Below, piece by piece: positions 33,133 to 63,636 of a stretch of 64,000 nt of DNA. Under the pieces are notes generated by a model that did not search any database, was not told the origin of the DNA, and worked only from the letters and a program-made list of their open reading frames with translations. This DNA comes from Felis catus (lineage: Eukaryota): NCBI RefSeq assembly GCF_018350175.1, contig NC_058377.1, positions 102,920,001 to 102,984,000 on the forward strand. Direction: 5' to 3'. A program made the position numbers and the translations under genes. Position 1 is the first letter of the stretch; each line of letters begins with the position of its first letter.

Positions 33133-34092
33133 TCAACGGGTGTCCGAGGCTGCTTTACTGGCGATGGCATTCCTCAGGGCACCTTTGACATCCTTGTTCC
33201 TAAGGGTGTAAATCAGCGGGTTGAGTAAGGGGGTGACGAAGGTGTAGACCAAGGCGATTTGGCGGTCCTCGTCCTCTGAGGTGCTGGAGCGGGGACGCAG
33301 GTAGACCAGGCTGCAACAGCCATACTGCAGCAGGACCACGGTGAGGTGCGACGAGCAAGTGGAGAAGGCCCGGCGGCGGCCCTCGGCGGAGCGGATGCGC
33401 AGGATGGCGGAGGCGATGAACACGTAGGACACACAGATAAGCAGGAAGGGGACGGTCAGCACCAGGATGCCCACCACGTAGAGCACGGCCTGGTGCACGC
33501 GGATGTCGGCGCAGGCCAGCCGCAGGACGGGAGGCACGTCGCACAGGAAGTGGTTGATTTCCCGGCGGTGCCCGCAGAAGGGCAAGGTGAAGATCAAGCA
33601 GGCGAGCTGCAGGGAGAGGAGGAGGGCCAGGCCCAGGGCGCACAGCACCATCCGGACGCACAGCTTCTGGGTCATGATGAGGGTGTAGCGCAGCGGGTGG
33701 CAGATGGCCACGTAGCGATCGTATGCCATGATTGCCAAGAGGAAGCAGTCAGCGCTGCCAAGGGCGACGAAAAAGAACATTTGGGCCCCACAGCCAGCCA
33801 GCGGAATGGGTTTCCGGGCGCCCCAAAGGTTGGCAAGCATCAGAGGCACCACAACAGAGGTGTAGCAGATTTCCAGGAAAGACAGGTTGCACAGGAAGAA
33901 GTACATGGGGGTGTGCAGCGAGCTGTGTGTGCGCACCGCCCAGACGATGGCCGCGTTGCCACAAAGGATCATCAAGTAGAGCAGGAGGAAGAGGAGGAAG
34001 AGGAGGGCCTGCAATTCGGGGACGGTGGTGAACGCGCGGAACACGAACTCGGTGGGGCCGGACTGGTTGAGGACGGGGCTCCTGGCAAACAT
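33133..34092 (-). CDS. OR10Q1: Olfactory receptor 10Q1, intact, 319 aa from MFARSPVLNQS
   Basis: OR motifs present. The C-terminal third (QYGCCSLVYLRPRSSTSEDED..KAASD) matches recalled human OR10Q1. Acceptor cttgcAG at 34099-34098 lies just before the ATG, so the 26 upstream in-frame codons are probably intronic. Confidence 0.93.
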   Translation of the reverse strand: MFARSPVLNQSGPTEFVFRAFTTVPELQALLFLLFLLLYLMILCGNAAIVWAVRTHSSLHTPMYFFLCNLSFLEICYTSVVVPLMLANLWGARKPIPLAGCGAQMFFFVALGSADCFLLAIMAYDRYVAICHPLRYTLIMTQKLCVRMVLCALGLALLLSLQLACLIFTLPFCGHRREINHFLCDVPPVLRLACADIRVHQAVLYVVGILVLTVPFLLICVSYVFIASAILRIRSAEGRRRAFSTCSSHLTVVLLQYGCCSLVYLRPRSSTSEDEDRQIALVYTFVTPLLNPLIYTLRNKDVKGALRNAIASKAASDTR

Positions 34093-35602
34093 GTCCCCTG
34101 CAAGCGAGCGACAGAAAGGGCCGGATCTTCCTTCGCTGAGTTGTTTTATTGCGGGAAGAAAAGCAGACATTTTAAATTTGATTTCTGATTTGGCATTTAG
34201 TATCCAGTTTCCAAATTCAGTGCTTGGGATGAATTCACACTAGAGGCTACGGTATATGTTTTCCCAAGGAATCTTCAAAAATGGGATAGATAGTAATCTG
34301 TAGAGTTCCTTGTGCCAAAGACTTATAGATATTCTTTGGTGAAATGTCTTTTTTTTTTTTTTTTTTTTACACTGGTATTTTACATCTAATTTGACAAGGG
34401 CTAAATCTTTGCTTGCATTGCATCGAACAGTTGTGCGGTTGTAGATGTTTTTTACATTAGACAAACGGATGTGGTTTTTTTGGTAAACATTCTTAGTGAA
34501 ATGTAACAACCAGAGGCATTCACAAATCCTAAGTGTAGGGCTTGAATTTTTTGCACTGTAAATACACTAGTATAGCCACTATCAAGAGGGACAAATTGAA
34601 CAATTCCAGAAACTTACACCCATCTCTCCTGTCTCCTGACTTTCTACCTTACAAAGGTAAACCGCCCTTTCAACTTTGGTCACTGCAGATCAGTTTACGT
34701 TTCAATTCCTACGTGTGATGATAAAGCGTGTACTGTCTTGTGACGGGCTCCGACGTTGTGTCTGCAAAGTTATTTCTGCTGTTCCATGTAACATTTGTTA
34801 TCCTTTCTGTTGTTTTAGAGTCTTCCATTTTACGGCTGTGCTGCGATTTATTCTAGAGTTCACTTTTCATCCCATTATTTTGGCTCAGATAAAACTGGGC
34901 CAACACCTTTTATTCCAGTCCTTTCTGAGATACACTTTTTATATATTTCCTCTCGTTTCAATTTTTTTTTTCTAAATTTCCAGGCATGAACCTAAACTTT
35001 AGGGCTAGGACAGATTCACCTAGACGGGGACTGTAGGGAGTAAGGAAAAATGAAGGTAGAACTGCTAGACATAAGAAAAGGCAATAAGGAAACTAAAAAT
35101 GCAGTAGCAGAATTGAAATAGACATTAGAACACGCAGGCGAGTAAGAAAAGAACTTTAAAAGCATCTAGGAAGGGAAAAGTACGTATAAATTAAGCACCT
35201 TCGGCTACTACAACTTGCCCAAGAGACAATAAAGTCATATCTGTAGGTTTAAGAAAAACAAACTGGTGTCAAAGAATTCTGTACCCACGCTTTAGTGATT
35301 TAGGTTCAAAAGCAACAGATAGACTCTCTCAGATTTACAAGGGCTTAGGAAGTATGTCGTTCTAAATACAATTGAAATAATTTCTCAACAAAGACTCTGT
35401 GCTCCTGGGTGATTAATCAGGATACATAATCCAGGACTGGGGAAGTTGTAATGGAAAAACTCGATGTGAAAAATCAAATAGTAAATATATATATTTAACA
35501 CTAAATGGTTAATACAAATATTATTCAAAGAAAAAAAATTCCCCGAATAGTGCTTGAAAACATACATAATATAAAATGCAAACATTAAAATAATTCCTCA
35601 CA

Positions 35603-35808
35603 TTAAAAAAACTTTATGTTTATTTATTTTTGAGAAAGAGAGAGAGTGCAAGCAGGGAAGGGGCAGAGAGAGAGGGAGACACAGAACGCAAAGCAGGCTT
35701 CAAGCTCCAAGCTGTCAGCACAGAGCCCGACGTGGGGCTCGAACTCACCGCGAGATCATGAGCTGAATTGAAGTTGGACGCTTAACCAACTGAGCCACCT
35801 AGGTGTCC
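35603..35808 (-). mobile_element. CAN-SINE
   Basis: TSD aataattcctcacatt. Confidence 0.95.
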
Positions 35809-36879
35809 CAATAATTCCTCACATTTAAAACCATGAATTATATTCATTGGTAAACTGATAGGGAGTGATGGGAGAAATAAAATAATAATGAAGTAATATC
35901 CTCAATCTGTATAAGGAAGGATTCAAGAGATATTTCATTCGGACGTGACTAATCACAGAAATACCTATTCAAACGTATATTTCTATAATGATCATATGTA
36001 GAATAAGTCACAGCATATCCATCCCAAATGACCCGATTAAGAGTACATATAGTGCAGAGAACAAAAGGCTGAAACAAAGGAAAATGTGAACAAGCATATA
36101 AGATGAAATGGCTTAAACAAGAAAAGTAAATGTTTAATTTCTGCAAACAAGTTTAAATGAAGTTGATGTTCCATTAAAGACAGAGTCTCATATTTACATC
36201 ATAGGCACATCCACCCAGTGTACACACAAAGACCTAGAAAGGCTGGCATTACTTTGGTTTAGCATGACATTTTGTGACTGAGCCAATGCAAGGGGACAGA
36301 AAAAAGGAGATAGAGGATTTCACGAACTGAAAACACAACAGAACCAATCGAAAAATTAGGACCACCCCGACAGTCAGTCCACTGGCTAGTCATTTTGTAA
36401 TTATGTGATTTTATTACGTATGACAAAACCTGATAAGATGTTACGTGGCTATAAATTATGAAAATTAACAATGGACTGCTTAAGAAACACCTGATAATTA
36501 CAGGCTGCTAAAAATTTTTGTGGGATAAGGCGTGTACCAGAACAATGAAAGACTGGGAACGAAAATGATACAATTTTCAGTAAGTTCATATTCATATCTG
36601 CCATGGGTCTAAATGTTCACGCCATCGTTACAAAAGCTAAAACTGGAATTAACATATCCTGAGAATCAAGGCTTTGATTTCAGGTGATACAGACTCAAAG
36701 CCCTCGGCTTTAGATCCAAAGGTTGATGAATAAGTTCCCCTTTGAATATTTTAAGTTAAAGTAAATGATTATGGTAAGTATGTACTTCATGCTTTGTTTG
36801 GATCTTAGGGCTTTCTGGGTTTTGTTTGTTTGTTTTGTTTTGTTTTTTAATCAATGTTAGTTAGAAAGTGCCTTTCCCA

Positions 36880-37095
36880 GGGCGCCTGGGTGGCTCAGTC
36901 GGTTAAGCATTGGACTCTTGGTTTCGGCTCAGGTCACGATCTCACGTTTCATGAATTTGAGCCCTGTGTCGGGCTCTGTGCTGACAGCACAGAGCCTGCT
37001 TGGAATTCTCTCTCTCTCTCTGTTCCTCCCCTGCTCCCTCTCTCTCCTTCTCTCTCTCTCAAAAATAAATTAATAAACTTAAAAAATTTTAAAAA
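36880..37095 (+). mobile_element. CAN-SINE
   Basis: TSD agaaagtgcc(t/c)ttccc. Confidence 0.95.
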
Positions 37096-38731
37096 GAAAG
37101 TGCCCTTCCCTCAAACAACCACCAAAAGGAATGAGTGAATAATAAATAAGACACCAGGGAATAAACCTAAGGAGTAACAAGTAGGAACTATTTGAAGAAA
37201 ACTGTTACATGGCTGGATGGAAAACCCAATATTTTAGTGTTAACTGGCTCTGAAGGAATGTGTAATTTCTATGAAATTCCTATCAAAATCCCTAGAAGAA
37301 TAAACAGATGGAAAGACAAGAGAGCTAAAAAAAAAAAAAAATGAGTGCCATCACAGAACAGAATTTGCATCACAAGATGTTAAAATAGATCACAAATGAT
37401 CATATGTTATAAAATAGATCCTATGTTATGTCATAAATCAAAATGGCGTTCGTAGAGCACCAGAGATCCAGCACGTTAGAACAGAAAGAATCATTAACAG
37501 TAGCCGATCGTTCGATAGCATTCATTTGGTCAGGCATTGATTTATGCAGTTTACATTCCTTGACTTATTTCACAACGGTCCTCTAAAAAGGGGCTCTTGT
37601 ACCTGTTGTATGGATGAGAAAACTGAGGCCCAGAGAGGTTAAGTAACTTGCCCAAAGCTGTCACCACAGCTAGCACGTGCCAGAATGGGAATTTAAACGT
37701 AAGTTGGCTCCAGAGTCTCTTGTCTTAATCACTGTGTTATATTGCTTCTGTCTATTATGTGCATCAGTTTTATTATTTGTAAAATGGATCTGAAAATACA
37801 TGTATCTACTTCGTAGGTTGTTGTCAGACTTTGTCAAAGGAATTATTTTATAAAAGTACTTAGAACAGTCCAGGCACAGAGTATACATGCAATGGATACG
37901 AACTATTGTCACTATTTCAAATCAATTCGAGAGGACCAACAGTTTCCTGATATGGACTCAGGACAATGGGCTAATCATTTAAAAAAAAGAACTCCCTAAC
38001 ACATTATGTATCAACATTTATTTCTGATGGACTTAAGATTCAAATATTTTAAAAAGAGGAAGAAAACTACAAGATAGTGAAGATGAACGTTTTTCAGTCC
38101 AAAGAGTACAGATGATTTGCAAGCAAATGTGCTGCACGCATAAAAAGATTGATATTTTGACAGAATAAAAATTTAAAAGATCTGTGGGTCAAAAATAAAA
38201 TAAGCAAACTAAATAGAAGGTGAAATCTTATATAATTCACCAAAAATAAACCCATCAATAGAAAAACAAATAGAGGATCTGAACAGGCAATTCAAAAAAG
38301 AAATATGCAAACGCAAACAAATATATGCAAATCCAATGTCATTAATACTCAAATAAATATACAATGAAACAAGATCAGATACTATTTTCTGCTTATAAAC
38401 TGACAGTAGCGGAAAAAAAGATAATCCCTGCTGTTGTTAAAGTTTCAAGGAGAGACACATCCCTGACTATTGTTAGTGGAAGTAGAAGGTGCTAGAAAAA
38501 TTTCTGAAGTATAATCTGGAGATACGTAATAGGAGACTTGAGTAAATGCCTACATTTTGCTTCAGTGATATTCTTTTTAAAAATTTATTCTTATAGACTA
38601 TGAGTCTGTGCATAAAATTATTACAGTTTTCAATATAACAGTGAAAAACTGTGTCAACCAAAATATCAGTAATAAGAAAATGGTTAATCCATGTGAGAGA
38701 ACATGTAATCATTTAAAAATGATATTGCAGA

Positions 38732-39120
38732 CTATTGACAAGAGCCAAAGTATGGAAAGAGCCCAAATGTCCATCGACGGATAAATGGATAAAGAAGATG
38801 AGGTATATATATATAATGGAATATTACTCAGCAATAAAAAACAATGAAATCTTGCCATTTGCAATATATGATTTCACTCATATGTGAGAATTAAGATACA
38901 AAACACATGAACATAAAGGAAGGGAATCAAAAATAATATAAAAACAGAGAGGGAGACAAACCATAAGAGACCTTAAATACAGAGAACAGACCGAGGGCTG
39001 CTGCAGGGGAGGTTGGTGGGGGGATAGGTTAAACAGGTATGGGCATTAAAGAGGGCACTTGTTGGGATGAGCACTGGGCGTTATATGTAAGTGATGAATC
39101 ACTAAATTCTATTCCTGAAA
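38732..39120 (+). mobile_element. Carnivore L1 3' end inserted into an older L1M
   Basis: Typical carnivore L1 ORF2-end and 3' UTR sequence. Degenerate TSD aaaaa(t/gc)gat(a/g)ttgcaga. Internal deletion of roughly 65 bp relative to the recalled consensus. Confidence 0.8.
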
Positions 39121-40274
39121 AAAAAGCGATGTTGCAGAAAATTATTTAATAAGATCTAGAAGGCTCATGAAGAAGCAGATTATAAAAAAGCATTACATCA
39201 TGATTCCATTTAAAAAACAATTATATCTACTCATAAATTGAAAGAACATTTTTAAAAATGTTAATAATAGATATTGATGGGGGAGTGGGATTGAGAATCT
39301 TTTTCTTTATGACTTACGCTTCTCTGTCTTTACAAATTTTATAATGAACATACACAATTTGGCAATCATATAGCAAATTAAAATTTTTCCTCTGTGCATT
39401 GGTGTCTCAACATGGTGTTGGGAAGGAGGGCTGGTAGAGTGTCAGTCACACGGATTTTTGTAGTCAATGAGATCTGGTTATGAAATCTAGTCCCCTTATA
39501 TTTGCTAATTTAATTTCCACATTAATTATGTTACTTGGTAAGCCTTGGTTCTCTAATGTATGATGGAGGAAGTGAATCTGGTGCCTAATAGGGAATTTAT
39601 GAAGATTAAATATTTCAAAAAATAATGTGTCTGGGGATAGCAAGCATCCAACTGCCCTCCCCTCTCTTTTCTCACGGTGGTGAGTTTCCTTTGGATATTT
39701 ACCGTTCGTTCTTGTCTCTTCCAGAGTGGAAGAGCTTCCTCTACAGCTGAATCCTTCCAGGTTGTACAGTTGCTCTCATAAACCTTGAATAATAATAGTA
39801 ACAGAAAATAAGGAAGAGTAAAACAAAGTGAAAGTGAGATTTCAGTAAAATAATTAAAATTATGTGTGGTGAAAACCACATAAGAGATCTGGATTCAAGA
39901 AAACATTTCAAAATGATTCTATCGGATTAAGACATGGGCATTGAATGTGCAGCACTGTACCTCATGAGAACATGCGAGATTTGGTACAAGACATAATCTG
40001 GGGATAAAGTAAGACATGTAGTATTGGAACCTGATGTCTGCCAGGACAAGTCACTACAAGGTGATTTCAAGGAGCAACTCGCACACACATCCAAGGTGGG
40101 TCTACATAGCCTATTGAAAAACCAGACGCAACAGAGTTTGTGTTTACAAAATAGGGCTTTCCTCTTCAGGGTTCATTTTCAAAGGTTTTTCACTCTGCTG
40201 TTCTCAAAGAACCTCCCAACCCTGTTATCATCACTACCTGTGAATTCACTTGATTTCCAGCTACTTGTATTCCT

Positions 40275-40284
40275 TCCCTGGGGA
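40275..40284. promoter_or_regulatory. Perfect O/E (Ebf) site upstream of OR10Q1
   Basis: TCCCTGGGGA matches TCCC-NN-GGGA. A single 10-mer can occur by chance. Confidence 0.35.
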
Positions 40285-40870
40285 GTTCATGCTTAAAGCA
40301 CTCAACTCTGGTAGTGCCCGTCTGATAAACATTTCAGTCAGGGCTACATTTAAGCAATATTTAAGGGCAAGAATGTCTCTCTTGTTCATCAGTGTATCCC
40401 TATGGCCATTGATTTGATTCAAACTAAATCGGATTATTTTGTGGTTAAATTTCGTGCCCTTTAAACTTCCTTTAAAAGCCAACGTCGGGTGGCTCCTTCT
40501 ACAGCCCAGTTAGCCTGCAATTCCTCCAGCTCCACCTTGACTGGGACTTCCTCAGTCCAGTGGTTATTTAGTTTGTTTGTCTGCTACAGGGCATAAAGCA
40601 GGGCTCGGGTGGGATAGATTCAGTTGATGAGTAGTGGGAAGCACTGATGTACGTGTTGAGCCAGTAAGTTTGAGAATGTTGGGAAACTCAGGTAATGATT
40701 ATTCCTCAATAGCCAATGAAGCAGTATTGGAGTTTGTAATGTATTGCATCCTGGCAACGCATAAACAGCATGCATGTAACACAGAAACACTTTTGAAAAT
40801 GTCAGGGAACCATGAAACCACGGCCAGGTCCCGCCATAGGTCAAACGTGTACTCTTTTAGAAAATATGCA

Positions 40871-41072
40871 GGGGCACCTGGTTGGTTCAGTCAGTGAAGC
40901 GTCCGACTTTGGCTCAGGTCATGATCTCATGGTTTGTGAGTTTGAGCCCCACGTCGGGCTCTGTGCTGAGGGTTCAGAACCTGGAGCCTGCTTTGGATTC
41001 CGTGTCTCCCTCTCTTTCTGTCCCTTCCCTGCTCACACAATCTCTCTCTCTCTCTCTCAAAAATAAATAAAA
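40871..41072 (+). mobile_element. CAN-SINE
   Basis: Full structure. Confidence 0.95.
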
Positions 41073-42905
41073 CAGAAAGTTGAATCCTTATATCTGGGAA
41101 CTGTAAGGGGACTCAAGAGACGTCAGTTCTATCCTCTTGTATCCTACATGCAAAAACTGAGGTCCACCAAGATGAAGCCTTGTCCAAAGGCACGTGGCTG
41201 GTTATGGGCAAACCTGAGGCCAGAATCCACACTGGATGTATTAGTTAGCAGAGAGTAGAGTCTATGTATATCAATACCTCACTTTTCACCTATATCAAGG
41301 GCTGCTTAACTTACCTAGAGACTGCAAACATCTAGGCAAAACAGGATACTTGGTATGACTCTGGTAGTGTTGCTAAAAAACATGCCCAGACTCAGACTAC
41401 TACTGTGCACACAGGTAAGGGAGGCCACATCTTTTGCAAATATTTTGAGAGCTCTTTAATACATCTCCTGCCCCCCAAACTATTTCCCTTAGATACATCC
41501 TACTCCTCTTTCAGAGCTCAGTTCAGTTCTTCCCCAGAAAACTTTTCCTGATTCTCATTTTCCCCCAACTCTAGAGATAGGTGCTCCCTCTGTGAACTTC
41601 CAGAAAACCCCTTCATCTCAACTCTAAGGTCATGCATAGTAACTTACCCATAAATAAATCAAGTGAACATTTATTGAGTGTCTGTTATTAACTCAAGTCT
41701 TGGGCTCAGCTATGTAGAGGGATCTAAGAAAATTACGACTTAATTGCCAAATTCAGCCTTATAAGGAAACAAAGCACCTGAGAAGAGAATTTAAACATCT
41801 TCTGAGGAACCAGTTTTGAAACTGTGTTCCTTAGAACATGAGCTGTTGGCGATGCTTCAGGAATGAGTTTGATGACATTGAAAACATTCACACTCTTCCT
41901 CAAGGTTCACGATGCATATTAGTACAATAAAGTTCTCTGAGGTCCTATTGTAAAGCAAAGAGCTTAATTTTGCCTGAAAAATTTCCAGCTATTTTCACCA
42001 TGGAATACTTCGGTTTTCACATAGCACCATTAAATTGCTTATGATTTAATAACGTTACTGGAAAAAAATGAGTTTCATGCTATACTCTTTAGGATGGTCC
42101 CGAGGAGGAAATAGTGAAAGAAAAGGCAAAAGACGTGTTTCATACTGGCTTTATACTTATCAGGTATATGAAACTGAGCAATTCAATCACTTATCAGAGT
42201 TTCCTTTTCTGTATCTGTGAAAGTGGATAGTAACACACACTCTGATAATTCATTGGTTTTCCACAATTTAATATTGATATACATGAGTATTTTTCCCCAA
42301 TAGTAAACATTATAGGAATTTGTGTTTCTATTATTATTTTTAAAAATAAAATCTAAATCAAATCAATCAAAGGAATTAAGTCTCTTGAGATGCTCTCTTA
42401 CCATTTTGAAATTTGCTTCATTCCATCAGCCTTCTAAGGAAATTCACTAAAGAGAAGGTTACCTTTTTTTCCCCTTTTCCTTTTTTTTTTCTGAGTTGCT
42501 CAGTTCCCACCCTGTAGGATAAAGGAGCTCTCTCTCAGAGTTCACTGACTTTTACAGGATAAAATGCAGTGAGGATCCATGAACTTTGCATGGTGCAATA
42601 TGTCCTGGAGAGGAGAAGTAGATGCTATGTGATACCTACAATATCCAGGTAAAAACAGAGAAGTTTCCTCTACATGCTAATATTCAGGAGAAGAGACACC
42701 TCTTAGAAATTTATGGTCAAGGTGAAGTAGGGTAAGAGAGATATCCTTTGGAAGGATGATCCTGTCGAATAATCCTAATTCAAGTTTGGAATTAGAAGTC
42801 TAGTCTCTTCCTTAACCATAGGAAATAAATTCTGGTACAGCCACTCAGAGTCCAGTCTTGTCTGATCTAGTCAGATCATTTAGTGTCCTTTGTAAAAGGT
42901 CTTTA

Positions 42906-42927
42906 AAATTAATGAGTCCCCAAAGAG
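42906..42927. promoter_or_regulatory. Candidate composite homeodomain (Lhx2) plus O/E (Ebf) motif
   Basis: aattAATGA-g-TCCCCAAAGAG: TAATGA one base from an O/E-like CCC-NN-AGAG site, in about 1 kb with no recognisable repeat. Confidence 0.45.
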
Positions 42928-43908
42928 GAGGAATTTCCCCAATGGTTTCCCCTCAAACTGAACCCAACTAGAGAAAAGTATTTGAGGAAAATTATTTTCT
43001 GAATTGACGAACTCAGCCAGTTGCCAATGGGCAACTCTTCTGTGTGGCCACTGTAGACATTTACTATCCGAGAATTCCATGAGGGTCTCCTCATTCCTTT
43101 CCTGTACCCGCCAGGGAACTTTCTAACGTTGTGTTCCAGACAGTTTCCCAGTGAGCATTGTTGAATGCCCACGTTCATTTCAGCCTGAACTCACGGCGTA
43201 TGTGTGATGCACTAATTCAGCACTAGCCTAGGCATCTGGGGATCTAAAGTATAGTTACAGCTCTGCCACGGGGCTCCTTCATCTTCGGCAAATACTGAAG
43301 CTCTAACATGGGCTCCTCATGTGGGGTGCGAGGTCATTGATTAATAGACATCATGGATCCTTTCAGCTCTAAACTTCTATGAACAGTGGGTGCCTTTTTC
43401 TTGAGAAGCAGAAAATTTATGAAGGATTTTCCCATAATCATTCCTTCTGGTCTATGGCCTCATTTCCTCTTATCTTACTTGTTTTTGTTTCTTGATTAAC
43501 TTTTTTCTCTGCTGATACTTTCTTAGTCATTAAAAGGTGGTGTTTTGTTTTGTTTTGTTTTGTAATTATAGTTACGTTTCCAACTCTGCCTTGCCATGTT
43601 TTTCTTATTTGTTTCTCCCTTCCCACCTCCCTCCAGACTTCATGGACTTAAAATCACATACCTTCTCATCATTGCTGCCATTTATTTTTAGCCACGTTCG
43701 GCCTCCTTGTCTCATGTCCATTATCAACAATACATTTTTAGTCAATATGTAACAAATATTTATTGAACTCCTGTTGTGAGGTAGGCCCTTCTGCCAACTC
43801 TCCGGATACTTCAGTGTACAAAATAGACAACTATTTTGTCCTCACAGAGATTGTGTTCTTGGAGAGGGGAGAACAGATCGCAAGCAATAAATAAGAATAC
43901 GCACATTT

Positions 43909-44112
43909 GGGGCGCCCAGGTGGCTCAGTTGGTTGAGCGTCCGACTTCGGCTCAGGTCACGATCTCACGGTTGGTGGGTTCCAGCCCCACGGCGGGCTCT
44001 GTGCTGGCAGCTCAGAGCCTGGATGGAGCCTGCTTCGGATTCTGTGTCTTCCTCTCTCTCTGCCCTCCCCTGCTGATGTTCTGTCTCTCTCTCAAAAATA
44101 AATAACCATTAG
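43909..44112 (+). mobile_element. CAN-SINE, left arm of an inverted pair
   Basis: Preceded by aagaatacgcacattt. Confidence 0.95.
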
Positions 44113-44127
44113 AAAAATACGCACGCT

Positions 44128-46494: not shown

Positions 46495-46526
<32 letters not shown>

Positions 46527-46564
46527 CATGAGCAGGGGAGAGGGGCAGAGGGTAAGAGAGAGAG

Positions 46565-46606
<42 letters not shown>

Positions 46607-48225: not shown

Positions 48226-48247
48226 TTTAAAAATAGAGAGAAAGAGA

Positions 48248-50206: not shown

Positions 50207-51151
50207 CTAGTTGTTCTGGGAGAGGCAATTCCTGGCAAGAACTCTCCCCAGGGTCCCCTTCATTTCACGGTTCCTCAGGGTGTAGATAAGTGGGTTGAGC
50301 AGTGGGGTTCCCAATGTGTACACCAGTGAAATGAACTGATCTTGCTTGGGGTAGTAGCTGGAGTTGGGGCGCAGGTACATGAAGGCACAACAGCCATACT
50401 GCAGCAGGACCACGGAGAGGTGGGAGGAGCAGGTGGAGAAGGCCCGGTGGCGGCCAGCTGCCGAGTGGATCTTGAGCACAGCAGCCACAATGAAGGCGTA
50501 GGAGGTGGCGATGAAGAAGAAAGGCATGGCAATGGCCAATGTGGCCGCCACCAGCACTGCCTGCTCATGGATGTGGCTGTTGGTGCAAACAAGACGCATC
50601 ACCGGTGGCACATCGCAAAAGAAGTGCTCGATAGTCCGCGCCCGGCAGAATGGCAGCGAGAAGATGAAGGCCACCAGTTGTATGGACAGGAACAAGCCAA
50701 TGACCACAGAGGCCACGACCAAGTGGACACAGAGAGTTAAAGTCACAGTGAGCGGGTACTGCAAGGGGGAGCAAATAGCAACATACCGGTCATAGGCCAT
50801 GGCAGCCAAGAGGAAGCAGTCAGCACTACCAAGCCCAATGAAGAAGATCATCTGAGTGGCACAGCCCAGGAGGGTGATGGTCTTCTCTGACTGGAGGATG
50901 TTGGTCAGGATGTGGGGCACCACCACAGCAGTGTAGCATAGTTCTATTCCCGAGAGGCTGCCCAGGAAGTAGTACATGGCTGTGTGCAGGCGTGCTTCTG
51001 TATGGATGGCCACCACAATGAAGACATTCCCACCAATGATCAAGATATAAACCAGGCTGACTCCAAGGAAAAATAAGACCTGGAGCTCTGGGGGAGACGG
51101 ATAGGCCAAGAACACAAATTCCATCAACATTGAGTGATTTCCCCAGGTCAT
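50207..51151 (-). CDS. OR10W1: Olfactory receptor 10W1, intact, 314 aa
   Basis: Matches recalled OR10W1 ([52 protein letters not shown]). N-glycosylation site NHS near the N-terminus. Confidence 0.93.
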
Positions 51152-53329: not shown

Positions 53330-53405
53330 TGCTTTCATTTTTGTTGTTGTTGCGTTCTGTTTTGTGTTTGAGAGAGAGAAAGCATGAGCGGAGGAGGGGC
53401 AGAGG

Positions 53406-53457
<52 letters not shown>

Positions 53458-53580
53458 CTTAAGCAGTCTTCACACTCAGCCTGGAGCCTGACACAGGGCT
53501 CAATCCCGTGACCCTGGGATCATGACCTGAGCCAAAATCAAGAGTCAGATGCTCAACCGATGGAGCCATCCAGGCTCCCT
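53330..53580 (-). mobile_element. CAN-SINE with long (GA)n
   Basis: Full structure. Confidence 0.93.
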
Positions 53581-53849
53581 GGAAATGTTCTAATTTTAAA
53601 TAACTTACTTAGAAGTATACTGCATGGGACAGATCACAGGGATGGTCAAGTATAAAGAGATCTGGGTATCAGTATCTGTCCATTGGCAGTCTATTGCTTC
53701 AGACTAACCAAAATTAGATTCATCCAGTTGTTTGTGTTTCATTGTTTTGATAGTCTCCTCAGACATGGACTGAGGTAGCTCCCTGGATGCTAAAACCCTA
53801 AACATTATTTTTTCATTTTCAGAGAAGCAAAACATGCTCATCATGTTTA

Positions 53850-54010
53850 TACTTATATTTATATTAAATATATTATGTATTTAATAGATATTAATTAATT
53901 TAATCAATTAATTATATTATATAACTATAATTATGTTATATAATATAATTAATATAATATATAATATAATAATATAATATAAATATATTAAATATATTTT
54001 ATATGTATGC
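53850..54010. repeat. AT-rich low-complexity tract including (ATATA)n
   Basis: Direct reading. Confidence 0.9.
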
Positions 54011-55156
54011 CATAAAAATTTATGTACATCAAAGTCTGATTCAATGCTATAAAGAAGTGTGTCATAAGATTAAACAACATACGTCTCTGACATAGTTTGT
54101 GATTAGGGGATTCGGAAAGGCTTCCTAGAGGAGTAATATTCAAGCTTAAATCTGAAAAATAGAATTAATCAGGAGAAGAACGACAGGCAGAGTAATGGGG
54201 TCCATATTCCGGGCAGATGAAAAAGTAGATTGAATGTTCAAAGAGAGTGAAACTTATTGTAACCGCATGTCATCAACTTGTTTTTCCAAGTTGTTACTAA
54301 ACATGTGGCATGGGACAGAGGCAAGAGTAGAGAGAGCACTCCAGCATCGTGCCCAGAAATCTGCCCAGGCTGGCATCTGTTCGTGAAGCCACACCTATCT
54401 CGGTGGCTGCAAGTCACAGCCCACGCCATATCTACATCTCCCCTCTTACCTCTCCAGCCAGGCCAGCCCCATGTGGCAAGAGTGTCTGAGAAACCTTGCC
54501 CGTGTGCATTCTGGAAATACAAGATGTCCAGACGGCAGTGGCTCTCAAATTGTGGAGTTAGCATTGTGCAAAACAAGGGGGTTAGCAGATTTGGTGATAC
54601 CACACCCCAGGCAGAATCTCAAGCTATTATTAATAGCGATGTCACTGGGGCAGATCAACTCACATTAATGTCTGTCTCCTCATGTTCCGAAAACATAAAT
54701 AATAATACTCACCTAATGGAGTTGTGATGGAATTAAATGGGATAAAGTATTTAGAACCCTTGGTTTGATGTGTGAAACCTATTAAGTTGCATAATAAATG
54801 TTAATTCTTCTCTCCTTTCTTCGGATCTGTTAAAAGGATATTAATAATACCTGCTTCATAGCAGAGGATTAAATGAGGTACCTTACAAGAAAAGGACTTT
54901 TATTAATTCCTTAAACCTTCTCCAAACTTACATTAGCCATCCCTTCAGTATTTTTTAGGCTAAGATGAGTTATTACCATTTTAATCAGAAGAATAGGCCT
55001 TCCAAGTGAATTTAGAGGAACACGATAAGCCGTGGGCTGAATGAGCTCTAAAATCTTGGAGTCTCTACTTGCAGAGCCATTACTTGCTTTTCTAGCCTGG
55101 TGTCATTGGGTACCTGGTATGTTGTAAATCTAGAAGGAGACAGAAAAAGACTCCTT

Positions 55157-55330
55157 CTTACCTTTATCATGAGAAGGAGGAGGGGTGTACCGAGCCGGTC
55201 TCCTCAGGTCTAGTCGTAAGAGACGGAAGAGAGCAGGTGAGGGCTGTTTGGTGGAGACAGAGAGGACCATGAGGCCAGAAAGTTGGCCCCGTGGGATGGA
55301 AGCTTTAGTAACCTTCCCAAGGAAATTCGC
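55157..55330 (-). promoter_or_regulatory. Candidate non-coding 5' exon and promoter of OR10W1
   Basis: Minus-strand donor aag|GTAAGA at 55162/55161, with O/E-like sites ccccgtggga (~55287) and ttcccaaggaa (~55314) just upstream. Confidence 0.3.
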
Positions 55331-55700
55331 GGAAGGAATAAATTGCTCTGCTCTCTAGGGCCTTAGTCCATAAATTCTGTCTCTCCCAGCAGGTGGTTTC
55401 ATGACTGTTGATCTCTCCTGTGACCAGATAATGAGCCGAAGCCAAAACTGTCCCTGCACTTGGGAGCTCCCATCAATGGAAGATCTGCTGTGAGCTTGTC
55501 AAAGTGAAGACCAGTATTAAACCCTTTATCAACACTCTCAGCGTCCCATATAATTTCCTGAGAAATAAGACAGTCCCTAATCAAGGTCATTTGTGCTTCC
55601 TGTTTCAAGTAGTTGACTGCCACCAGATTGTCATAGCTGGGTCAGCCCAAGTCCCAAGTTATTATTGCCGTGGGGAACTGAGACCATATTTTGTATTTTA

Positions 55701-56474
55701 GGGGTGTCTGGGTGGCTCAGTCGGTTAAGCATCTGACTTCAGCTCAGGTCATGACCTCATGGTTCAAGGGTTCGAGCCCCACATGGGGCTCTGTGCTGAC
55801 AGCTCAGCTCCTGGAGCCTGCTTCAGATTCTATGTCTCCCTCTCTCTTTCCATCCCCCCTCACACTCTGTCTCTCTGTCTCTCTCAAAAATGAATAAACG
55901 TTAAAAAAATTATATTTTCTATGAAAAAGGGGGACCTGGTAACCTTGGTTATATATAAAGGAATGAATTGAGGGGAAATGCTAGACAGACATTTAACTTT
56001 CCTCTGTCGCTTATTAATTCTATATTTTTTTAACGTTTGTTTATTTTTGTGAGAAAGACAGAGCATGAACAAGGGAGGGACAGAGAGAGAGGGAGACACA
56101 GAGTCTGAGGTAGGCTCCAGGCTCTGAGCTGTCAGCACAGAGCTTGATGCGGGGCTCAAACTCACGGACAGCGAGATCATGACCTGAGCCGAAGTCGGAC
56201 ACTTAACTGACTGAGCCACCTAGGCACCCCTCCTCTGTCACTTCTTTTTTTTTTTTTTTTTAATTTTTCTTTAACATTTATTTATTTTTGAGACAGAGAG
56301 AGACAGAGCATGAACGGGGGAGGGGCAGAGAGAGAGGGAGACACAGAATCGGAAACAGGCTCCAGGCTCCGAGCCATCAGCCCAGAGCCTGACGCGGGGC
56401 TCGAACTCCCGGACCGCGAGATCGTGACCTGGCTGAAGTCGGACGCTTAACCGACTGAGCCACCCAGGCGCCCC
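55701..56474. mobile_element. Cluster of three CAN-SINEs (55701-55910 +, 56020-56231 -, 56244-56474 -)
   Basis: Three heads and tails. TSD tcctctgtc(g/a)ctt around the middle one. Confidence 0.93.
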
Positions 56475-57175
56475 CAGAAGCCTCTTCTTTAAGGAGGTGA
56501 TGTTTGACCTGAAACATGAATGATGAGAAGAAGCAATCCATGAAATATGGGATTAAAAAAAAAAAATTCAAACACAGGGAAATACAGTTGAAGGTAGTAA
56601 AGAACTCAAAGCTGGAAGAAAAAAAAAACCGCAACATGCCTAAAATAAAAAAATATTGAAATGTAAGCATATCCAGGCATATGGATATTGGAAATCTTAT
56701 CATTCAGAGACCTTCACTGAGAAAACGAGACGTGGGGAAGTGGCCTGATTTGTATAGTGTCCAAAAAGTCAGTGGCAAAAACGGGACTAACTTGGTTCTT
56801 CTGATTTCATCTAAGAATGTCCGCTGACTATTGAGCATTAAAACCAGGTGGCTCTTCAGGATCCCAAGGGAAGTGAGTAGAGAATAAGCATCTAGTTTTA
56901 AAAGATCAGCACACTGCTTTCAATAACTCCTTAGGCCAAGGATTTAATCTTTTTCTAAAGATGAAAACTAATCAGAGTGAGAATTTTTTGAGATTGAATA
57001 TATTTCTAAGAACTAAATGATTGCACATTTTGAAGTAATACTTTGTATGATGAGTTTCTAGTGAATAAAATGTCGTTAAAAGGATTTCCTCACATTTTTC
57101 TAATACAGAAATGTAAATAATACCACTGAGATGACAAGTTGCATCAGAGCCTTTCTTTGTCATTTCCTAGGCTGT

Positions 57176-60100
57176 TGTGGTCATTTTAATGTATTATCTT
57201 GGCTAGGCCAGAGTCCCTAAATATTTGGTCAAACACCAGTCTAGATGTTACTTGTGAAGATATTTTTAGGTGAGATTAACAATTTAATGAGTAGGATTTG
57301 AGTAAAGCAGACTATTATCTGTTATGTGGGTGGGTCACATCTAATCAGTTGAAAGCCTTAAGAGGAAAGAGGACTGAGGTGCCCTGAATAAGAGGGATTC
57401 TTCCTCTAGACTGCCTTCACATTCAAGCTGAGACATCAACTCTTCCCTTGGTCTTCAGCCTGCTGGCCTACCCTGCAGAGTTTGAACTCACTAGACCCAC
57501 AACTGCATGAGCCAATTCCATAAAACAAGCTTTTCCTCCCTCCCCCCCCCCCCATGCAACCTATTGGTTCTGCTTCCTGGAGAACCCTGATTAATACAGT
57601 TTTTTATCCCAAGAGTGGTTCTAGAGGAACAGAATATTAAGGATGAGTTTTCAGAATTGGTTCTGGGGTTTGTGGAATTGTCTCACTAATCTGATAAGAG
57701 TTAAAGGCACTGAAGACTCCACTTCAAGTGGTAAAGGGAACACTGAGTCTACAGTGTGATGCAGCAACAAAGATACGCAAAATATCACCACTGGCTACAG
57801 CTAAGTCAGTACTTATGGAAGCCAGGTTTTGGGTGACCATGCACATGATACCTTCAGATATTTTCGTCCAAGTGATGACTATAATGAGATTGGCTGTTTG
57901 CTTCTAAATGCACTAGAGTAAGTGGGAAAGAAAAGGTTGAGTCCGGTGATTCAAAGTCTCAGCTCTACTATTTCATAAATGACCTGAAAACTTCCATGCC
58001 TGCCTGAAAGAGACCAGTGTATTCTGTAGTTGTGAGCTGAGGTTGCTGAAAAACACACCCAGAATCTCATTCTGTGAGTGGCTGATTTACAATGTAAATT
58101 GGATTCTTAGCCTCTCAGGGTTTCCTCCTGACGTTTGAAGACATTAGCTGGGAAGGAATGGGACCCTAAAAATTGGAATGAGGATATACAGGATAATTCC
58201 TGATGATTCTGGGGGCATAGAACCCCTAAATTCTGATGAGTCTTCTTTGGCAGTAGAACAAGGCATACCACTCCCACTGAGGAGATTAATCCTGCCTTAC
58301 CTATAATGGCCTCCGCTGAGGGATTTGCCTTATGAGACACTGCTGGTTCTCCATAGGATCCACTCCCATCACCCCTCTTTGCTTCTTGACCTATAACTAG
58401 GCCCAAGTCCCAGCAGGCCCTGAAAGATGGGGTACAAAGTCTATCATTAAAAAAAATTTTTTTTACACTTATTTATTTTTGATAGACAGAGAGAGACAGA
58501 GCACAAGTGGGGGAGGGGCAGAGAGAGAAGGAGACACAGAACTGAAGCAGGCTCCGGGCTCCGAGCTATCAGCACAGAGCCCGACGCAGGGCTTGATCTC
58601 ACAAACCACAAGATCATGACATGAGCTGAAGTCGGACGCTTAACTGACTGAGCCACCCAGGCGCCCCTACAAAGTCTATCATATGAAGAGGTGCATTACA
58701 TTGTAAAAGAAATACATGATTTTTTCTAATTTATAACAAACAAAAATCTAGGGAATGTGCGTAGAAATGGATATTAAATGTATGGGTTAATGATGGGAGG
58801 AACACAAAGTTGGATCAGGCTGAATTTATCGACATGGGTCCGCAAAGCATAGATTCTCAATTAACTTTGCAGCTTGGGGTGTTAGGGCTCTTAACAATTT
58901 GATTGTTTGGTTGAAACATGGGCCAGTAGGGGGGCTACACCAAAATAAGTTGAAATACGAGTCCTGCTTTGGTCTACTGTAGAGAAAACAATTGAAAAGC
59001 TTCAGGAGATTAGAAGTTAGAGTGGATTTGTCACTTAAGACCCGCTTACCTATCCCAGGAAAGTCCAGAAGACACAACTTTCCCCATGACTGTGGGAAAC
59101 AAATTTATAAGGGGAGCCCCCAACATTTTTGAAGGCTGTGTGATTGCTTTTCTCTCTGTCAGAAATTTCAGTGAGATCTGCTGCCTCTAAATTGGGAAGC
59201 CTAAATGCAATGGAAATACTTGGACCCCAGGGTGGCCAAGGCCAAGTGATGGTACTTACTTGTCAAAGGTAGGGTGGGTGTGGTTATTACACTGCACAGA
59301 GTCGAAGCAGTAATCAGAATAGTCTACTTCACAGAGACTTACGGCCTTGGCTAGTTGGTCACAGTGCTCCCAGAAGTGAAAGGATGAGAAGTCTACTACG
59401 TTATTACTTGATATGTATGAGTGGAAGAGTTCCGGATCAAGTGAACAAAAGTGTAACTTGAATCATAAAACAGAGAGTCAATTCCCAGACTTGAGCTAGT
59501 TCGCAGACCTAGAACCCCTTGAATGAAGGGGGAGGCTGTGCCCTCATGGGGAAGGACCCTACTATGCTTCCAAAAATGTATGTATGCTGTTAATCTTTTG
59601 CTCAGTCTTCCCCAAAGGGACCTAAACACTTTCAGCAACATGACTACCTTGGGGGAAAGGAAATAATCAGAATTTTCAGGTCTACTATACAATGGCCATG
59701 AACTGACACTAATTCCAGGAGACCCAGAAATCACTGTAGTCCCTAGTCAGAGTAGGTGCTTATGGAGACCAGGGGATCAAAGAACTTTTTTGCTCAGGTT
59801 CATCTCACAGTGGGTCCAGTGGGTCCCTAAACCCATCCTGTATTTTCTCCCCCAGTTTGGGATGCTTACTTTCAGGAAGATTTGGCTTCTCTGCATACAA
59901 TGCTTCTGCCGAAACTACATACTTACAGAATGCTTTATTTACAGTCACGGCATTTCATGCGGCATAGTTTTTTGCTCAAGGAACTCACTTTCTAGTAAAT
60001 GAAGTGATAATGGGCCCATGTTCATGGAACTCATTGGTCTTACCATGTTTCCCACCATCCTGAAGCATCTGGCTCGGTAGAGTAGTGAATGACCTTTTGA

Positions 60101-61552
60101 AGATAATTACAGCACCAGCTGGCTGACAGTACCTTTCAGGGCTGAGGCAAGTTTCTCCAGGAGGCTTTATGTGCTCTAAATCAGCATATAGTATTATTTC
60201 TCCCGTAGCCAGGACTCATACTTCCCATAGCCAGAAATATAGCATTATTTCTCCCATAGCCAGGACTTGCAAATCAGTGGGTGGAAATGGGAATGGATTC
60301 TGGTCATCCATCAGCAAAATTATTCTTTTCTGCCCCCATGACATTATGCTTTGCTGGTCAAGAGGTCTCTGTACCAGCAAACTGGACTGGTACAAACTTG
60401 AACTGGAAGTTAAGACTGTCACCTGGCCACTTTGGGCTCCTCATGACCCTGAATCAACAGGAAAACAAGGTATTACTGTACTGACTGGGGTAACATCCTG
60501 ATTACGAAGGGGAAATTGGACTGTTGCTTCATAATAGAGGTACTGAAGAGTGTCTTTCAAGGGAATCCCTTAGGGTATGTCTTAGTACTACCATGCCCTG
60601 TGGTTAAAATGGATGGGCCACTACAACAATTCAATTCAAGGAAGACTGTAAAAGTCCCAGACCTTTTGGGAAGGAAAGTTTGAGTCACTCCATTACATAA
60701 AGAACCACGGCAAGCTGGGATACTTTCTAAGGAGAAAGGGAATATGGAATGGGTATTGAAAGAAGGGATTTATAAACATCAGTTTTGAGCACATAACCAT
60801 TTGCAGAAATGAAGACTGCAATTGTTAGGTGTGTTTCTTCTTTATTTTTTTTAAGGAATATGTTTGTGAGTATGTATGTGTGTATTTTCTTCCCTTTCTT
60901 ATCCCATTAAAATATAACATAAAATGTATTAACTTTACATCATAGTATTTAAGTTACAGAGTATAAAGGACAAGGGTGAACATCACCCAAAGACTTTGCA
61001 TTCTCTTGGGGAGGAAAAGTACATTTTTGGTTATAGACACGATAATTGTTATCAGGTTGGGTAGAAATATGGCTGTTATTGTCTTTATTTGGAGGTCAAG
61101 TATGGTCTAAGGAGATGAGTATGAACGTCAAGTGGACAGGGGGTGGATAGTGATGATTACTTTTATGAGTCAATTGGCTAGGCTATGGTACTCGGTTGTT
61201 TAGTCAAATGCCAGTCAAGATGCTGCCATGAAGGTGTTTTTCAGATGTGCTGAACATGTAAATAAGTAGACTTTGTGCAGAGCAGCTTACCCTCCATAAT
61301 GTGGATGGACCTCATCTAATCTCTTAAAGGTCTTGAGAGAAAAGGCTGAGGCAGCCAGAAAAGGAAGGAATTCTTTTTCCATTGCCTTCAAACTCAAGAT
61401 GGCAACTGATGCCTGCTGGAACTTTCAGCCTGTTGGCCTCGGCCGAACATTTTGGATTTGCCCAACTTCACAACTGTGTGAGCCAATTGCTTGCAAACAC
61501 CTCTTTCTCTATCCTGTTTGTTCTGTTTCTCTGGAGAATGTTGACCAATACA
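57176..61552 (+). mobile_element. ERVL provirus with both MLT2-type LTRs (57176-57598 and ~61149-61552), internally deleted
   Basis: 5' LTR is followed by a PBS-like gagtggttctagagga, gag-like DMGP, protease-like HELTLIPGDP, integrase remnants, dUTPase LRLSPGHFGLLM, a polypurine tract and the 3' LTR ending aataCA. No RT motifs are visible. Confidence 0.85.
58446..58667 (-). mobile_element. CAN-SINE inside the ERVL
   Basis: TSD tacaaagtctatcat. Confidence 0.95.
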
Positions 61553-61824
61553 GAGGATGACCGCTGGAGAGTTTGACCATGATACTTGATGACCCACTCT
61601 TGCTTTCCCAGAACTTAGGGGGTCTTATGTTGGCCTAAGTTATTCTCAACACATGTTAACTCTCAGAGCAAACTGATTCTGCACCACCTTTCCTGACTTA
61701 CTTGTACAATCCTGGATTGAATGTGGGAGCATAGGTTAGACCCAACCACAGGACCTTGTAATGTACAAAAGAGGCTTAATGAAGGAAATAGGTGCATTAA
61801 CCAGGTTATTACTTGTCATACTTT

Positions 61825-62036
61825 AAAGGTTTTTTTTAAGCTTATTTATTTATTTGAGAGAAATAGAGAGTGTGAGCAGAGGAGGGGCAGAGAGAGACAG
61901 GGAGAGAGAGAATCCCAAGAAGGCTCCACTCTGTCAGTTCACAGCCCAATGCGAGGCTCAAACCCATGAACCGTGAGATCATGACCTGAGCCGAAATCAA
62001 GAGCAGGTCACTTCACCGACTGAGCCACCCAGGCAA
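61825..62036 (-). mobile_element. CAN-SINE
   Basis: TSD tgtcatact(t/c)taaa. Confidence 0.95.
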
Positions 62037-62411
62037 CTCTGTCATACTCTAAACACAAAACAAGAATAAGGCATTTTAGGTGAGATATCCTTATGAACAT
62101 TTTCCAAGCAATCAGCTAATACCATTGTTTCTCAAGAGGAAGCTTCAAAGATAATAACATTGCTTCAGAATAAATGTAGACTTTTAATCCGTGGCTAAGT
62201 GAATAATAGCCTACAGAAATCTTGTCAATTTTCAGTTTTAAAGGTTCAGAGAACTTTAAAAACATCAAAGTGAACTGTAGCAAACAAGCATGTTAGGGAC
62301 AGAAGAAATGAAAATCCAAACTTTGGAGAAATAAATGTAAATCTGGCATTTGTGGTAAGGGTTTCACTGTTGTCCTATGCTCAGGGACCTGTTTCAAGTC
62401 CCCCTGAAACT

Positions 62412-63371
62412 TCAGAGAGCTTCACCTGTTCCTTTGCTACTGATGGCCTTTTTCAGGGCACCTTTGACATCCTTGTTCCTAAGGGTGTAAATCAGCGGGT
62501 TGAGTAGGGGGGTGATGAAGGTGTAGACTAGGGCAAACTGGCGGTCCTCATCCACCGACGAGCCCGATTGGGGACGCAAGTAGACCAAGGCACAGAAGCC
62601 ATACTGCAGCAGGACCACGGTGAGGTGCGACGAGCAGGTGGAGAAGGCCCGGCGGCGGCCCTCGGCGGAGCGGATGCGCAGGATGGCGGAGGCGATGAAC
62701 ACGTAGGACACACAGATAAGCAGGAAGGGGACGGTCAGCACCAGGATGCCCACCACGTAGAGCACGGCCTGGTGCACGCGGATGTCGGCGCAGGCCAGCC
62801 GCAGGACGGGAGGCACGTCGCACAGGAAGTGGTTGATTTCCCGGCGGTGCCCGCAGAAGGGCAAGGTGAAGATCAAGCAGGCGAGCTGCAGGGAGAGGAG
62901 GAGGGCCAGGCCCAGGGCGCACAGCACCATCCGGACGCACAGCTTCTGGGTCATGATGAGGGTGTAGCGCAGCGGGTGGCAGATGGCCACGTAGCGATCG
63001 TATGCCATGATTGCCAAGAGGAAGCAGTCAGCGCTGCCAAGGGCGACGAAAAAGAACATTTGGGCCCCACAGCCAGCCAGCGGAATGGGTTTCCGGGCGC
63101 CCCAAAGGTTGGCAAGCATCAGAGGCACCACAACAGAGGTGTAGCAGATTTCTACGAAAGACAGGTTGCACAGGAAGAAGTACATGGGGGTGTGCAGCGA
63201 GCTGTGTGTGCGCACCGCCCAGACGATGGCCGCGTTGCCACAAAGGATCATCAAGTAGAGCAGGAGGAAGAGGAGGAAGAGGAGGGCCTGCAATTCGGGG
63301 ACGGTGGTGAACGCGCGGAACACGAACTCGGTGGGGCCGGACTGGTTGAGGACGGGGCTCCTGGCAAACAT
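62412..63371 (-). CDS. Second OR10Q paralogue (OR10Q1-like, possibly the OR10Q2 orthologue), intact, 319 aa
   Basis: Collinear with 33133-34092 at a constant offset of 29279 nt. Identical except L72V, eight TM6-ECL3-TM7 residues and nine C-tail residues. Confidence 0.92.
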   Translation of the reverse strand: MFARSPVLNQSGPTEFVFRAFTTVPELQALLFLLFLLLYLMILCGNAAIVWAVRTHSSLHTPMYFFLCNLSFVEICYTSVVVPLMLANLWGARKPIPLAGCGAQMFFFVALGSADCFLLAIMAYDRYVAICHPLRYTLIMTQKLCVRMVLCALGLALLLSLQLACLIFTLPFCGHRREINHFLCDVPPVLRLACADIRVHQAVLYVVGILVLTVPFLLICVSYVFIASAILRIRSAEGRRRAFSTCSSHLTVVLLQYGFCALVYLRPQSGSSVDEDRQFALVYTFITPLLNPLIYTLRNKDVKGALKKAISSKGTGEAL

Positions 63372-63636
63372 GTCCCCTGCAAGAGAGCGACAGAAAGGGC
63401 CGGATCTTCCTTCGCTGAGTTGTCTTATTGTCCGAGTTAGAATAAAGGCACGTTTCGTGCAGAAAAAAATAACTCAATTCCTCAAATCATCTAGTTTGTT
63501 AAAAAAAAACCAAACGAAAGCGAAGTGTTGGGTGTTGTGTGATATAAATATCGTGAGAAGTAAAACAGTAAAACCCTGCTGTGTCTAAATAATTATTCCA
63601 AGTGTTGTTTTATAAAGAACAGAAGTTTCCAATATA

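Follow-up and report, generated by a model that had tools for sequence, protein, structure and literature searches.

Probable recurrent gene conversion between the olfactory receptor genes OR10Q1 and OR10Q1-like, with an unconverted island around extracellular loop 3

We analyzed a 64,000-nucleotide (nt) stretch of the Felis catus genome (RefSeq assembly GCF_018350175.1, contig NC_058377.1, positions 102,920,001 to 102,984,000; hereafter, the window), which contains two closely similar olfactory receptor (OR) genes. Gene A at 33133-34092 is the orthologue of OR10Q1 and gene B at 62412-63371 is that of OR10Q1-like; both lie on the minus strand, about 29 kb apart. A and B are very probably ancient paralogues between which interlocus gene conversion has recurred, mostly in the A-to-B direction. 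On the evidence of sequence comparison, we regard the paralogy, the orthology of each locus, the conversion, its recurrence, its boundaries and its direction as demonstrated. In the proposed history, OR10Q1 and OR10Q1-like would be tandem paralogues that were duplicated before the placental orders diverged, and only their coding exon would still be alignable between A and B. The first ~835 nt of this exon, to the codon after a QYG motif, would have been homogenised repeatedly through non-reciprocal interlocus gene conversion, in separate events in Felidae, Ursidae, Lontra and Camelidae and at an older date in Hippopotamus, with A as the donor in most cases. An island of 90 nt, which covers parts of transmembrane helix (TM) 6, extracellular loop 3 (ECL3) and TM7, and the C-terminal tail would have escaped conversion, with the ancestral state retained in A and a derived one in B. 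A further recent A-to-B tract would then leave L73V, the island and the tail as the sole protein differences between A and B.

Both genes consist of 319 codons and a stop codon; A possesses the ancestral A-type island and tail, and B the derived B-type island and tail. Typical OR motifs are present in both open reading frames (ORFs): PMYFF in TM2 at residue 62, MAYDRY at the end of TM3 at residue 122, an SHL-containing motif in TM6 at residue 248 and NPxxY in TM7 at residue 291. The Pfam profile 7tm_4 (cut-off, 27 bits) matched A with E=8e-54 and 183.8 bits (profile 1-278 of 280) and B with E=1e-54 and 186.7 bits (profile 1-280 of 280). By these features and by their orthologous flanks, A and B are predicted to be intact single-exon olfactory receptors of class A of the G protein-coupled receptors (GPCRs), belonging to the OR10Q1 group. 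The top database matches of A and B are all named OR10Q1 or OR10Q1-like (80-95% identity). In the felid cluster formed at 90% identity, proteins with the A-type island are named OR10Q1 and those with the B-type island OR10Q1-like; the A protein is the cluster representative P0002, and the B protein is P0121. In the whole assembly A and B are the sole close copies, the next paralogue being 71% identical, and the remaining ORs of the window have at most 55% protein identity to them. In copy A, an ORF of 345 amino acids (aa) opens at an extra ATG upstream, which lies outside the A/B homology limit. Since the annotated orthologues have 319 aa, the true start of A is most likely the ATG at 34092.

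A and B were compared without gaps at an offset of 29279. The homogenised tract, 33318-34151 in A and 62597-63430 in B (both minus strand, as are all segments below), comprises the last 59 nt of the 5' untranslated region (UTR) and nt 1-775 of the coding sequence (CDS), from TM1 to the QYG motif of TM6. In this tract 5 of 834 nt differ, at 33358, 33874, 33876, 34105 and 34145, and the 59-nt UTR portion is homogenised as well. The island follows at 33228-33317 in A and 62507-62596 in B (CDS nt 776-865, residues 259-288, running from the outer end of TM6 through ECL3 into early TM7), and differs at 23 of 90 nt. The next block, 33174-33227 in A and 62453-62506 in B (CDS 866-919, from the NPxxY region of TM7 to helix 8), is identical over all 54 nt. 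Finally, the C-terminal tails at 33133-33173 and 62412-62452 (CDS 920-960 including the stop codon) differ at 18 of 41 nt. An earlier reading of this DNA from its letters (hereafter, the sequence-only reading) had given the same difference counts, which our comparison reproduced. It had also described eight island residues and nine tail residues as different between the proteins, as we found; the tract residue that it named L72V becomes L73V when the 319-aa protein is numbered. At the eight variable positions of the island, A has CSRSTEIV and B has FAQGSVFI.

Outside these segments, 338-363 of the 500 nt flanking each side differ, which is the random level. In the blastn search, collinear similarity between A and B was restricted to 33163-34151 and 62442-63430, and the rest of the flanks had in common only scattered repeats of ~200 bp resembling short interspersed elements (SINEs), in agreement with the earlier remark that the flanks beyond the tract lack similarity. 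The rate of differences is far lower in the tract than in the island, well past what chance would give (Fisher p=1e-19), also when synonymous sites alone are counted (p=3e-13). A Sawyer-type permutation of polymorphic sites, scripted with the same logic as GENECONV, gave p<=1e-4 for the A/B pair of the window, and the fragment-length permutation gave p<=1e-4 in five A/B pairs.

A third gene was considered as the donor of the island and rejected. Each 90-nt island was found solely at its own locus in the whole assembly. Therefore, no import from an extant third gene took place.

For the cross-species comparison, both loci with 3-kb flanks were taken from Panthera (four assemblies across the two loci), Ursus, Lontra, Camelus and Hippopotamus, and two copies were taken from Suricata. 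The sampling comprises 16 sequences from six lineages, plus protein-level data (134 proteins). In the flank alignments, the A loci of all five other genera were collinear with the A flanks of the window and the B loci with its B flanks, and the A flanks were unrelated to the B flanks. The cross-species tract was taken from 60 nt upstream of the ATG to CDS 775. Within species, A and B differ in this tract at 6 positions in the window, 14-19 in Panthera, 15 in Ursus, 5 in Lontra, 15 in Camelus and 61 in Hippopotamus; between families, the differences number 67-127. In the island, the differences between A and B within species are 18-24, those among A copies 0-12 and those among B copies 1-16. 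The A island of the window is identical in Panthera A, and 6-8 nt separate it from the A copies of Ursus, Lontra, Camelus and Hippopotamus.

The tail groups by locus, as the island does. Among felids, Ursus, Lontra, Camelus and Hippopotamus, B tails differ at 0-4 of 41 nt. Orthologous A tails diverge quickly, at 5-13 of 41 nt, and their omega, the ratio of nonsynonymous to synonymous rates, is about 1. The constraint on the C-termini of A and B is asymmetric, in that the B tail is near-invariant across orders and the A tail is fast. In the 54-nt block, at most three nt differ among all A and B copies of felids, Ursus and Lontra; between A and B, 6 of 54 nt differ in camel and 11 of 54 in hippo. 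No synonymous change was seen in this block among the A copies of felids, bear and otter, where about three per pair are predicted from the synonymous divergence (dS) of the tract, 0.22-0.27; the block is thus conserved at synonymous sites.

The Suricata OR10Q1 copies (L025 and L026) were considered as a case of a converted island and rejected. With 29.4 kb between them, they share 94-95% identity over 6.3 kb or more, flanks included; both carry an A-type island, and their flanks match locus A. Thus, they represent a segmental duplication of A and not a converted B, and the argument does not draw on them. A B-type gene was not seen in Suricata. In L025, a fragment 3.7 kb downstream resembles the OR at 20046-21083 of the window.

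The phylogenetic trees of the tract and the island are in conflict. In the tract tree, A paired with B in every lineage with support of 100/100. When a clade of all A copies was forced, the log-likelihood (lnL) changed by -628.6, and this alternative was rejected by the approximately unbiased (AU) test (p=8e-12). In the island tree, all A copies were split from all B copies, again with support of 100/100, and forcing a felid A+B clade cost 28.9 lnL (AU p=3.3e-4, rejected). The check proposed with the sequence-only reading was that the tract should group by species and the island by locus, and this is the pattern observed. The main claim of that reading, that old paralogues were overwritten by ectopic conversion, is supported by this conflict, by the unrelated flanks of A and B and by the orthologous flanks that each locus has of its own.

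Synonymous divergence gave the same picture. Between A and B of the window, the tract has a dS of 0.010 and the island one of about 1.1. The tract dS between A and B within species is 0.010-0.034 in five lineages, and that between orthologues of different families is 0.21-0.43. Felidae has 23 derived states that are common to both copies of that lineage only; the corresponding numbers are 13 for Ursus, 17 for Lontra, 24 for Camelus and 25 for Hippopotamus, and none of these sites lies beyond CDS 754. By comparison, the sites fixed between A and B in all pairs are confined to CDS 776-835 and 924-943. These results indicate that the history of the tract is one of concerted evolution by interlocus gene conversion, and is neither constraint nor recent duplication. 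A recent duplication followed by fast divergence of the island and tail under positive selection, to which the 99.4% identity of the tract could point, and an extreme purifying selection on the tract in both genes are weighed below with the other alternatives.

The base composition of the co-derived substitutions was also recorded. Those from weak to strong base pairs and their reverse number 14:2 in Felidae and 11:5 in Camelus, and the ratio is reversed in Lontra (4:9) and Hippopotamus (4:14); the GC content of the tract is 0.62 in the window versus 0.56 in hippo. With respect to GC-biased conversion in the tract, this is suggestive only. Separately, five felid-specific derived substitutions common to A and B lie within 33 nt at 33802-33834 and 63081-63113 (CDS 259-291), between two of the micro-islands described below. 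This cluster could be a short imported patch, which later spread to both copies.

The 3' breakpoint of the tract is sharp. In each of the six lineages, A and B first differ in the island at CDS 776, as expected from the earlier prediction that similar breakpoints would recur in independent lineages. Codon 259 directly follows Q256-Y257-G258 (QYG). Ballesteros-Weinstein (BW) numbers and helix positions were assigned from conserved motifs, and H249, which we take to be the 6.40 anchor, agrees with the assignment of QYG to 6.47-6.49. On this numbering, QYG of A and B appears to be the counterpart of the OR 'FYG' motif, and the island would begin at 6.50. The FYG toggle motif occupies BW 6.47-6.49 and forms the floor of the odorant cavity (bioRxiv 10.1101/2022.08.02.502184).

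At the 5' side, the similarity between A and B stops 59-60 nt upstream of the ATG in every species pair; in the window, this limit lies at 34150-34154 in A and 63429-63433 in B (minus strand). A pyrimidine run followed by CAG and G is present exactly at this limit in Ursus B, Lontra B, Camelus B and Hippopotamus A, and the limit corresponds to an ancestral splice acceptor. At 34152-34160 and 63431-63440, the acceptor AG has been lost in both felid copies by different changes; the felid copies possess a second acceptor-like site 6 nt before the ATG. Since homology is confined to the coding exon, conversion is confined there.

Small B-specific segments survive inside the tract in other felids. 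Panthera B differs from A at CDS 217-240, 324-337 and 490, and, judged by proteins, B of Lynx, Prionailurus, Leopardus and Herpailurus does likewise. The residue changes from A to B at these micro-islands are L73V, C76S, S79T, V109L, A110T, S113G and A164T, and several of the alleles are common to Hippopotamus B and Ursus B. Residues 109 and 113 correspond to positions 3.33 and 3.37 when R126 is set as 3.50. Among 40 B-type proteins, V or I is present at 73 in 34, L at 109 in 31, G at 113 in 29 and A at 114 in 30, and among 87 A-type proteins, L73, V109 and S113 are present in 83, 82 and 83, respectively. Felid co-derived substitutions occur on both sides of the micro-islands, at CDS 139, 259-291, 399-448 and 494-663.

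B of the window departs from this pattern. Its states are those of A, with A110 and A164 specific to felid A among them, over a segment that starts at CDS 222 and reaches at least 490, where all other felid B genes listed keep S76, T79, L109, T110, G113 and T164. Its tract is nearer to A-type sequences (6-11 differences) than to Panthera B (19-22). These A states, at positions where other felid B genes carry ancient B alleles, mark what would be a recent A-to-B tract of 269-556 nt in the lineage of the window (minimal extent 62882-63150, CDS 222-490; maximal extent 62597-63152), which erased the micro-islands of TM2 and TM3. Codon 73 of B (63153-63155, Val; Leu in A at 33874-33876) is the last ancient B-specific codon of the tract in this genome, and its differences at CDS 217 and 219 are common to Panthera B and Hippopotamus B. 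Micro-islands have been lost to A states also in Lontra and Camelus, and one in Ursus. A is considered the usual donor because the lineages without B-diagnostic codons in TM2 and TM3 carry A states in both copies. The overwrite in the lineage of the window would be the latest episode of a process older than the placental radiation.

At the protein level, the two haplotypes of island and tail are found again, each at its own locus, in carnivores, cetartiodactyls, perissodactyls, bats, primates, a tree shrew and afrotherians. The island and tail types are concordant in 94 of the 134 proteins. Since all 12 of the 12 marsupial proteins carry the A signature, the A island is ancestral and the B island is derived. 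Chimeric or mixed islands were recorded for P0018, P0043, P0050 and P0069 (pinnipeds) and for P0076 and P0021 (bats). Both phocid copies read FARSTEFV at the eight island sites. The pinniped and bat chimeras indicate conversion with other breakpoints in some lineages.

As for the force that keeps the island distinct, we lean slightly towards purifying selection on B-specific residues of the cavity floor (6.50 and 6.52, together with 3.33 and 3.37 in most mammals), which would remove converted alleles. Such removal would explain both the fixed boundary and the surviving tiny B islands inside the tract. In its favor, the boundary is stable to one codon, and omega of the orthologous islands is within 0-0.12 (0-0.04 for A and 0.03-0.12 for B). 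V/I73, L109, G113 and A114 are kept in B-type proteins of many orders inside the homogenised tract. In addition, the 54-nt block past the island is homogenised in carnivores and the island itself is not. Several observations weigh on the other side. Micro-islands were lost in the lineage of the window, in Lontra, in Camelus and partly in Ursus, which weakens the case for selection. Island/tail chimeras are fixed in Odobenus, Callorhinus and Sturnira, and mixed islands in phocids, Molossus, Lemur and Tamandua; the island is thus convertible, the argument for selection on it is indirect, and the constraint is not absolute. The island is 20-25% divergent and lies at the edge of the sole homologous segment, where it would resist heteroduplex extension without any selection.

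The resistance of a divergent edge leads to an alternative that we consider possible and clearly less probable than selection. The same conversion would have occurred with the island unprotected by selection; heteroduplex formation and rejection by mismatch repair would halt the tracts at the divergent edge, and the homology boundary would reinforce itself. The tract would stay convertible because each conversion restores its identity. Consistent with this idea, A and B can be aligned past the island over 54 nt only, after which come the divergent tail and 3' sequences without relation to each other; at the 5' limit, too, homology simply ends, at an old exon boundary. The lineages that lost islands or micro-islands have retained the ORF. 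Furthermore, any working receptor should show purifying selection on its island, and such selection is no proof that conversion does harm. However, a barrier of this kind does not readily account for a boundary that has not crept, being at CDS 776 in six lineages separated by up to about 80-100 My, nor for micro-islands of 24 and 14 nt with B-specific pocket residues, which persist in most mammals within long runs of perfect homology, with co-derived substitutions on both sides. The homogenised carnivore block downstream of an unconverted island also argues against it.

It is unlikely that the mosaic is a chimera of assembly or polishing, in which A reads were used to correct B, above all over CDS 222-734. 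P0121 is carried on one contig, from the assembly of the window alone, and the B-type residues that it lacks at the micro-islands are kept by each other felid B listed; both points would fit such an error. However, the mosaic was reproduced in independent assemblies of Panthera (four), Ursus, Lontra and Camelus. B also keeps a codon 73, an island and a tail of its own, as well as a private UTR change 53 nt upstream of the ATG, and is not a wholesale copy of A. In 20 runs from nine studies, 93-97% of the sampled sequence words of the B region were present, which is weak evidence for the tract itself, as words cannot separate A-derived from B-derived sequence inside it. The general mosaic is considered real, as it is seen in independent assemblies of five other genera; the window-specific part, in which B is A-like over CDS 222-734, rests on one assembly.

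The remaining two explanations have almost no probability. A recent segmental duplication is at odds with unrelated A/B flanks, with orthologous flanks of each locus in other orders, with both island types recurring locus by locus across placental orders and with an island in which synonymous sites are saturated too; a true case, that of Suricata, looks different, as its similarity runs through the flanks. This outcome, which the sequence-only reading had named as one that would speak against it, was not seen: the similarity stops at the exon limits, and the flanks of each locus are conserved across carnivores and cetartiodactyls. Constraint alone could draw on the unusual conservation of OR10Q1 proteins among ORs (80-90% identity across placentals), yet synonymous and UTR sites are alike within species and divergent between species (dS 0.01 versus 0.21-0.43), and 13-25 lineage-specific derived states per lineage are common to both copies.

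Two further features of the window were recorded. An intact OR of 314 codons lies between A and B at 50207-51151 on the minus strand; it has ~55% protein identity to A and B, and is skipped by the exchange. Antisense ORFs of 280 and 290 codons lie opposite the two OR coding sequences at 33346-34188 and 62568-63440 on the plus strand. GC3, the GC content at third codon positions, is 0.89 in the sense frame of the OR coding regions; therefore, stop codons are scarce on the opposite strand. The antisense ORFs are read as probable by-products of composition, not as genes.

The homogenisation may itself be functional, which we consider rather doubtful and put forward by analogy with immune paired receptors. 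Conversion would hold the part from TM1 to TM5, which contacts the odorant, alike in the two receptors, and differences in their basal activity, coupling or trafficking would stem from the island and the tail. Since axon targeting is guided by the basal activity of the receptor, one odour channel might then have two read-outs, such as two glomerular targets, an idea to which we give equally little weight. If it were true, residues 73, 109, 113, 114, 259 and 261 together with ECL3 would be the minimal evolution-defined set of determinants.

The OR10Q pair offers a clean natural experiment, in which two receptors have been made near-isogenic repeatedly in several mammalian lineages. What stays different is a handful of residues next to the toggle motif of TM6, in ECL3, in early TM7 and in the tail, plus 3.33 and 3.37 in most mammals. 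This points to a short list of residues for what distinguishes two odorant receptors, and models of the limits that selection and sequence divergence set to conversion tracts can be tried on the pair. A practical point for annotation is that trees built from the whole OR10Q1 and OR10Q1-like genes will wrongly suggest lineage-specific duplications; the island, the tail or the flanks are the parts from which to assign orthology. Our literature search found no paper linking OR10Q1 to gene conversion or treating OR10Q1 evolution.

The primate L and M (long- and middle-wavelength) opsins are a related system. They are tandem class A GPCR paralogues that are homogenised by conversion except at a few tuning sites, which are thought to be retained by selection. 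Unlike the OR10Q pair, the L and M genes are a young pair on the X chromosome, and spectral effects have been measured for the sites that they retain.

The mechanism proposed here is not new, in that OR gene conversion and mosaic concerted evolution are both established. Conversion among clustered OR genes, with mosaic or homogenised coding regions as its outcomes, is described in a review (PMC1995454, after Sharon et al. 1999). The OR10Q genes resemble the cases summarised there, as tandem OR paralogues yield mosaic or homogenised coding regions. Unlike those cases, the OR10Q pair is ancient and conserved, and its conversion has recurred in at least five mammalian lineages with the same breakpoint and has skipped an intervening OR. 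Mosaic concerted evolution over more than 100 My, with boundaries conserved in several species, was reported for other gene pairs by Carson and Scherer (2009, PMC2720389), who read it as the co-evolution of one region and the functional divergence of another. As in those pairs, one part of the OR10Q genes has been kept alike by conversion since before the mammalian orders split, and other parts diverge. In contrast, that study includes no olfactory receptor, and the OR10Q mosaic lies inside one exon of 960 nt, with islands of 14-90 nt.

A looser likeness is found in the paired leukocyte receptors. According to the accounts of KLRC/NKG2, Siglec-11/16 and CEACAM (PMC3210942, PMC5701461, PMC5112662), their ligand-binding domains are homogenised and their signalling tails are distinct. 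Similarly, though by analogy only, conversion in the OR10Q pair keeps most of the ligand-facing part in step and the cytoplasmic tail is distinct. The two OR10Q receptors are not known to signal in opposite ways. In addition, their island includes positions that line the cavity, so that ligand tuning itself may differ between the two receptors.

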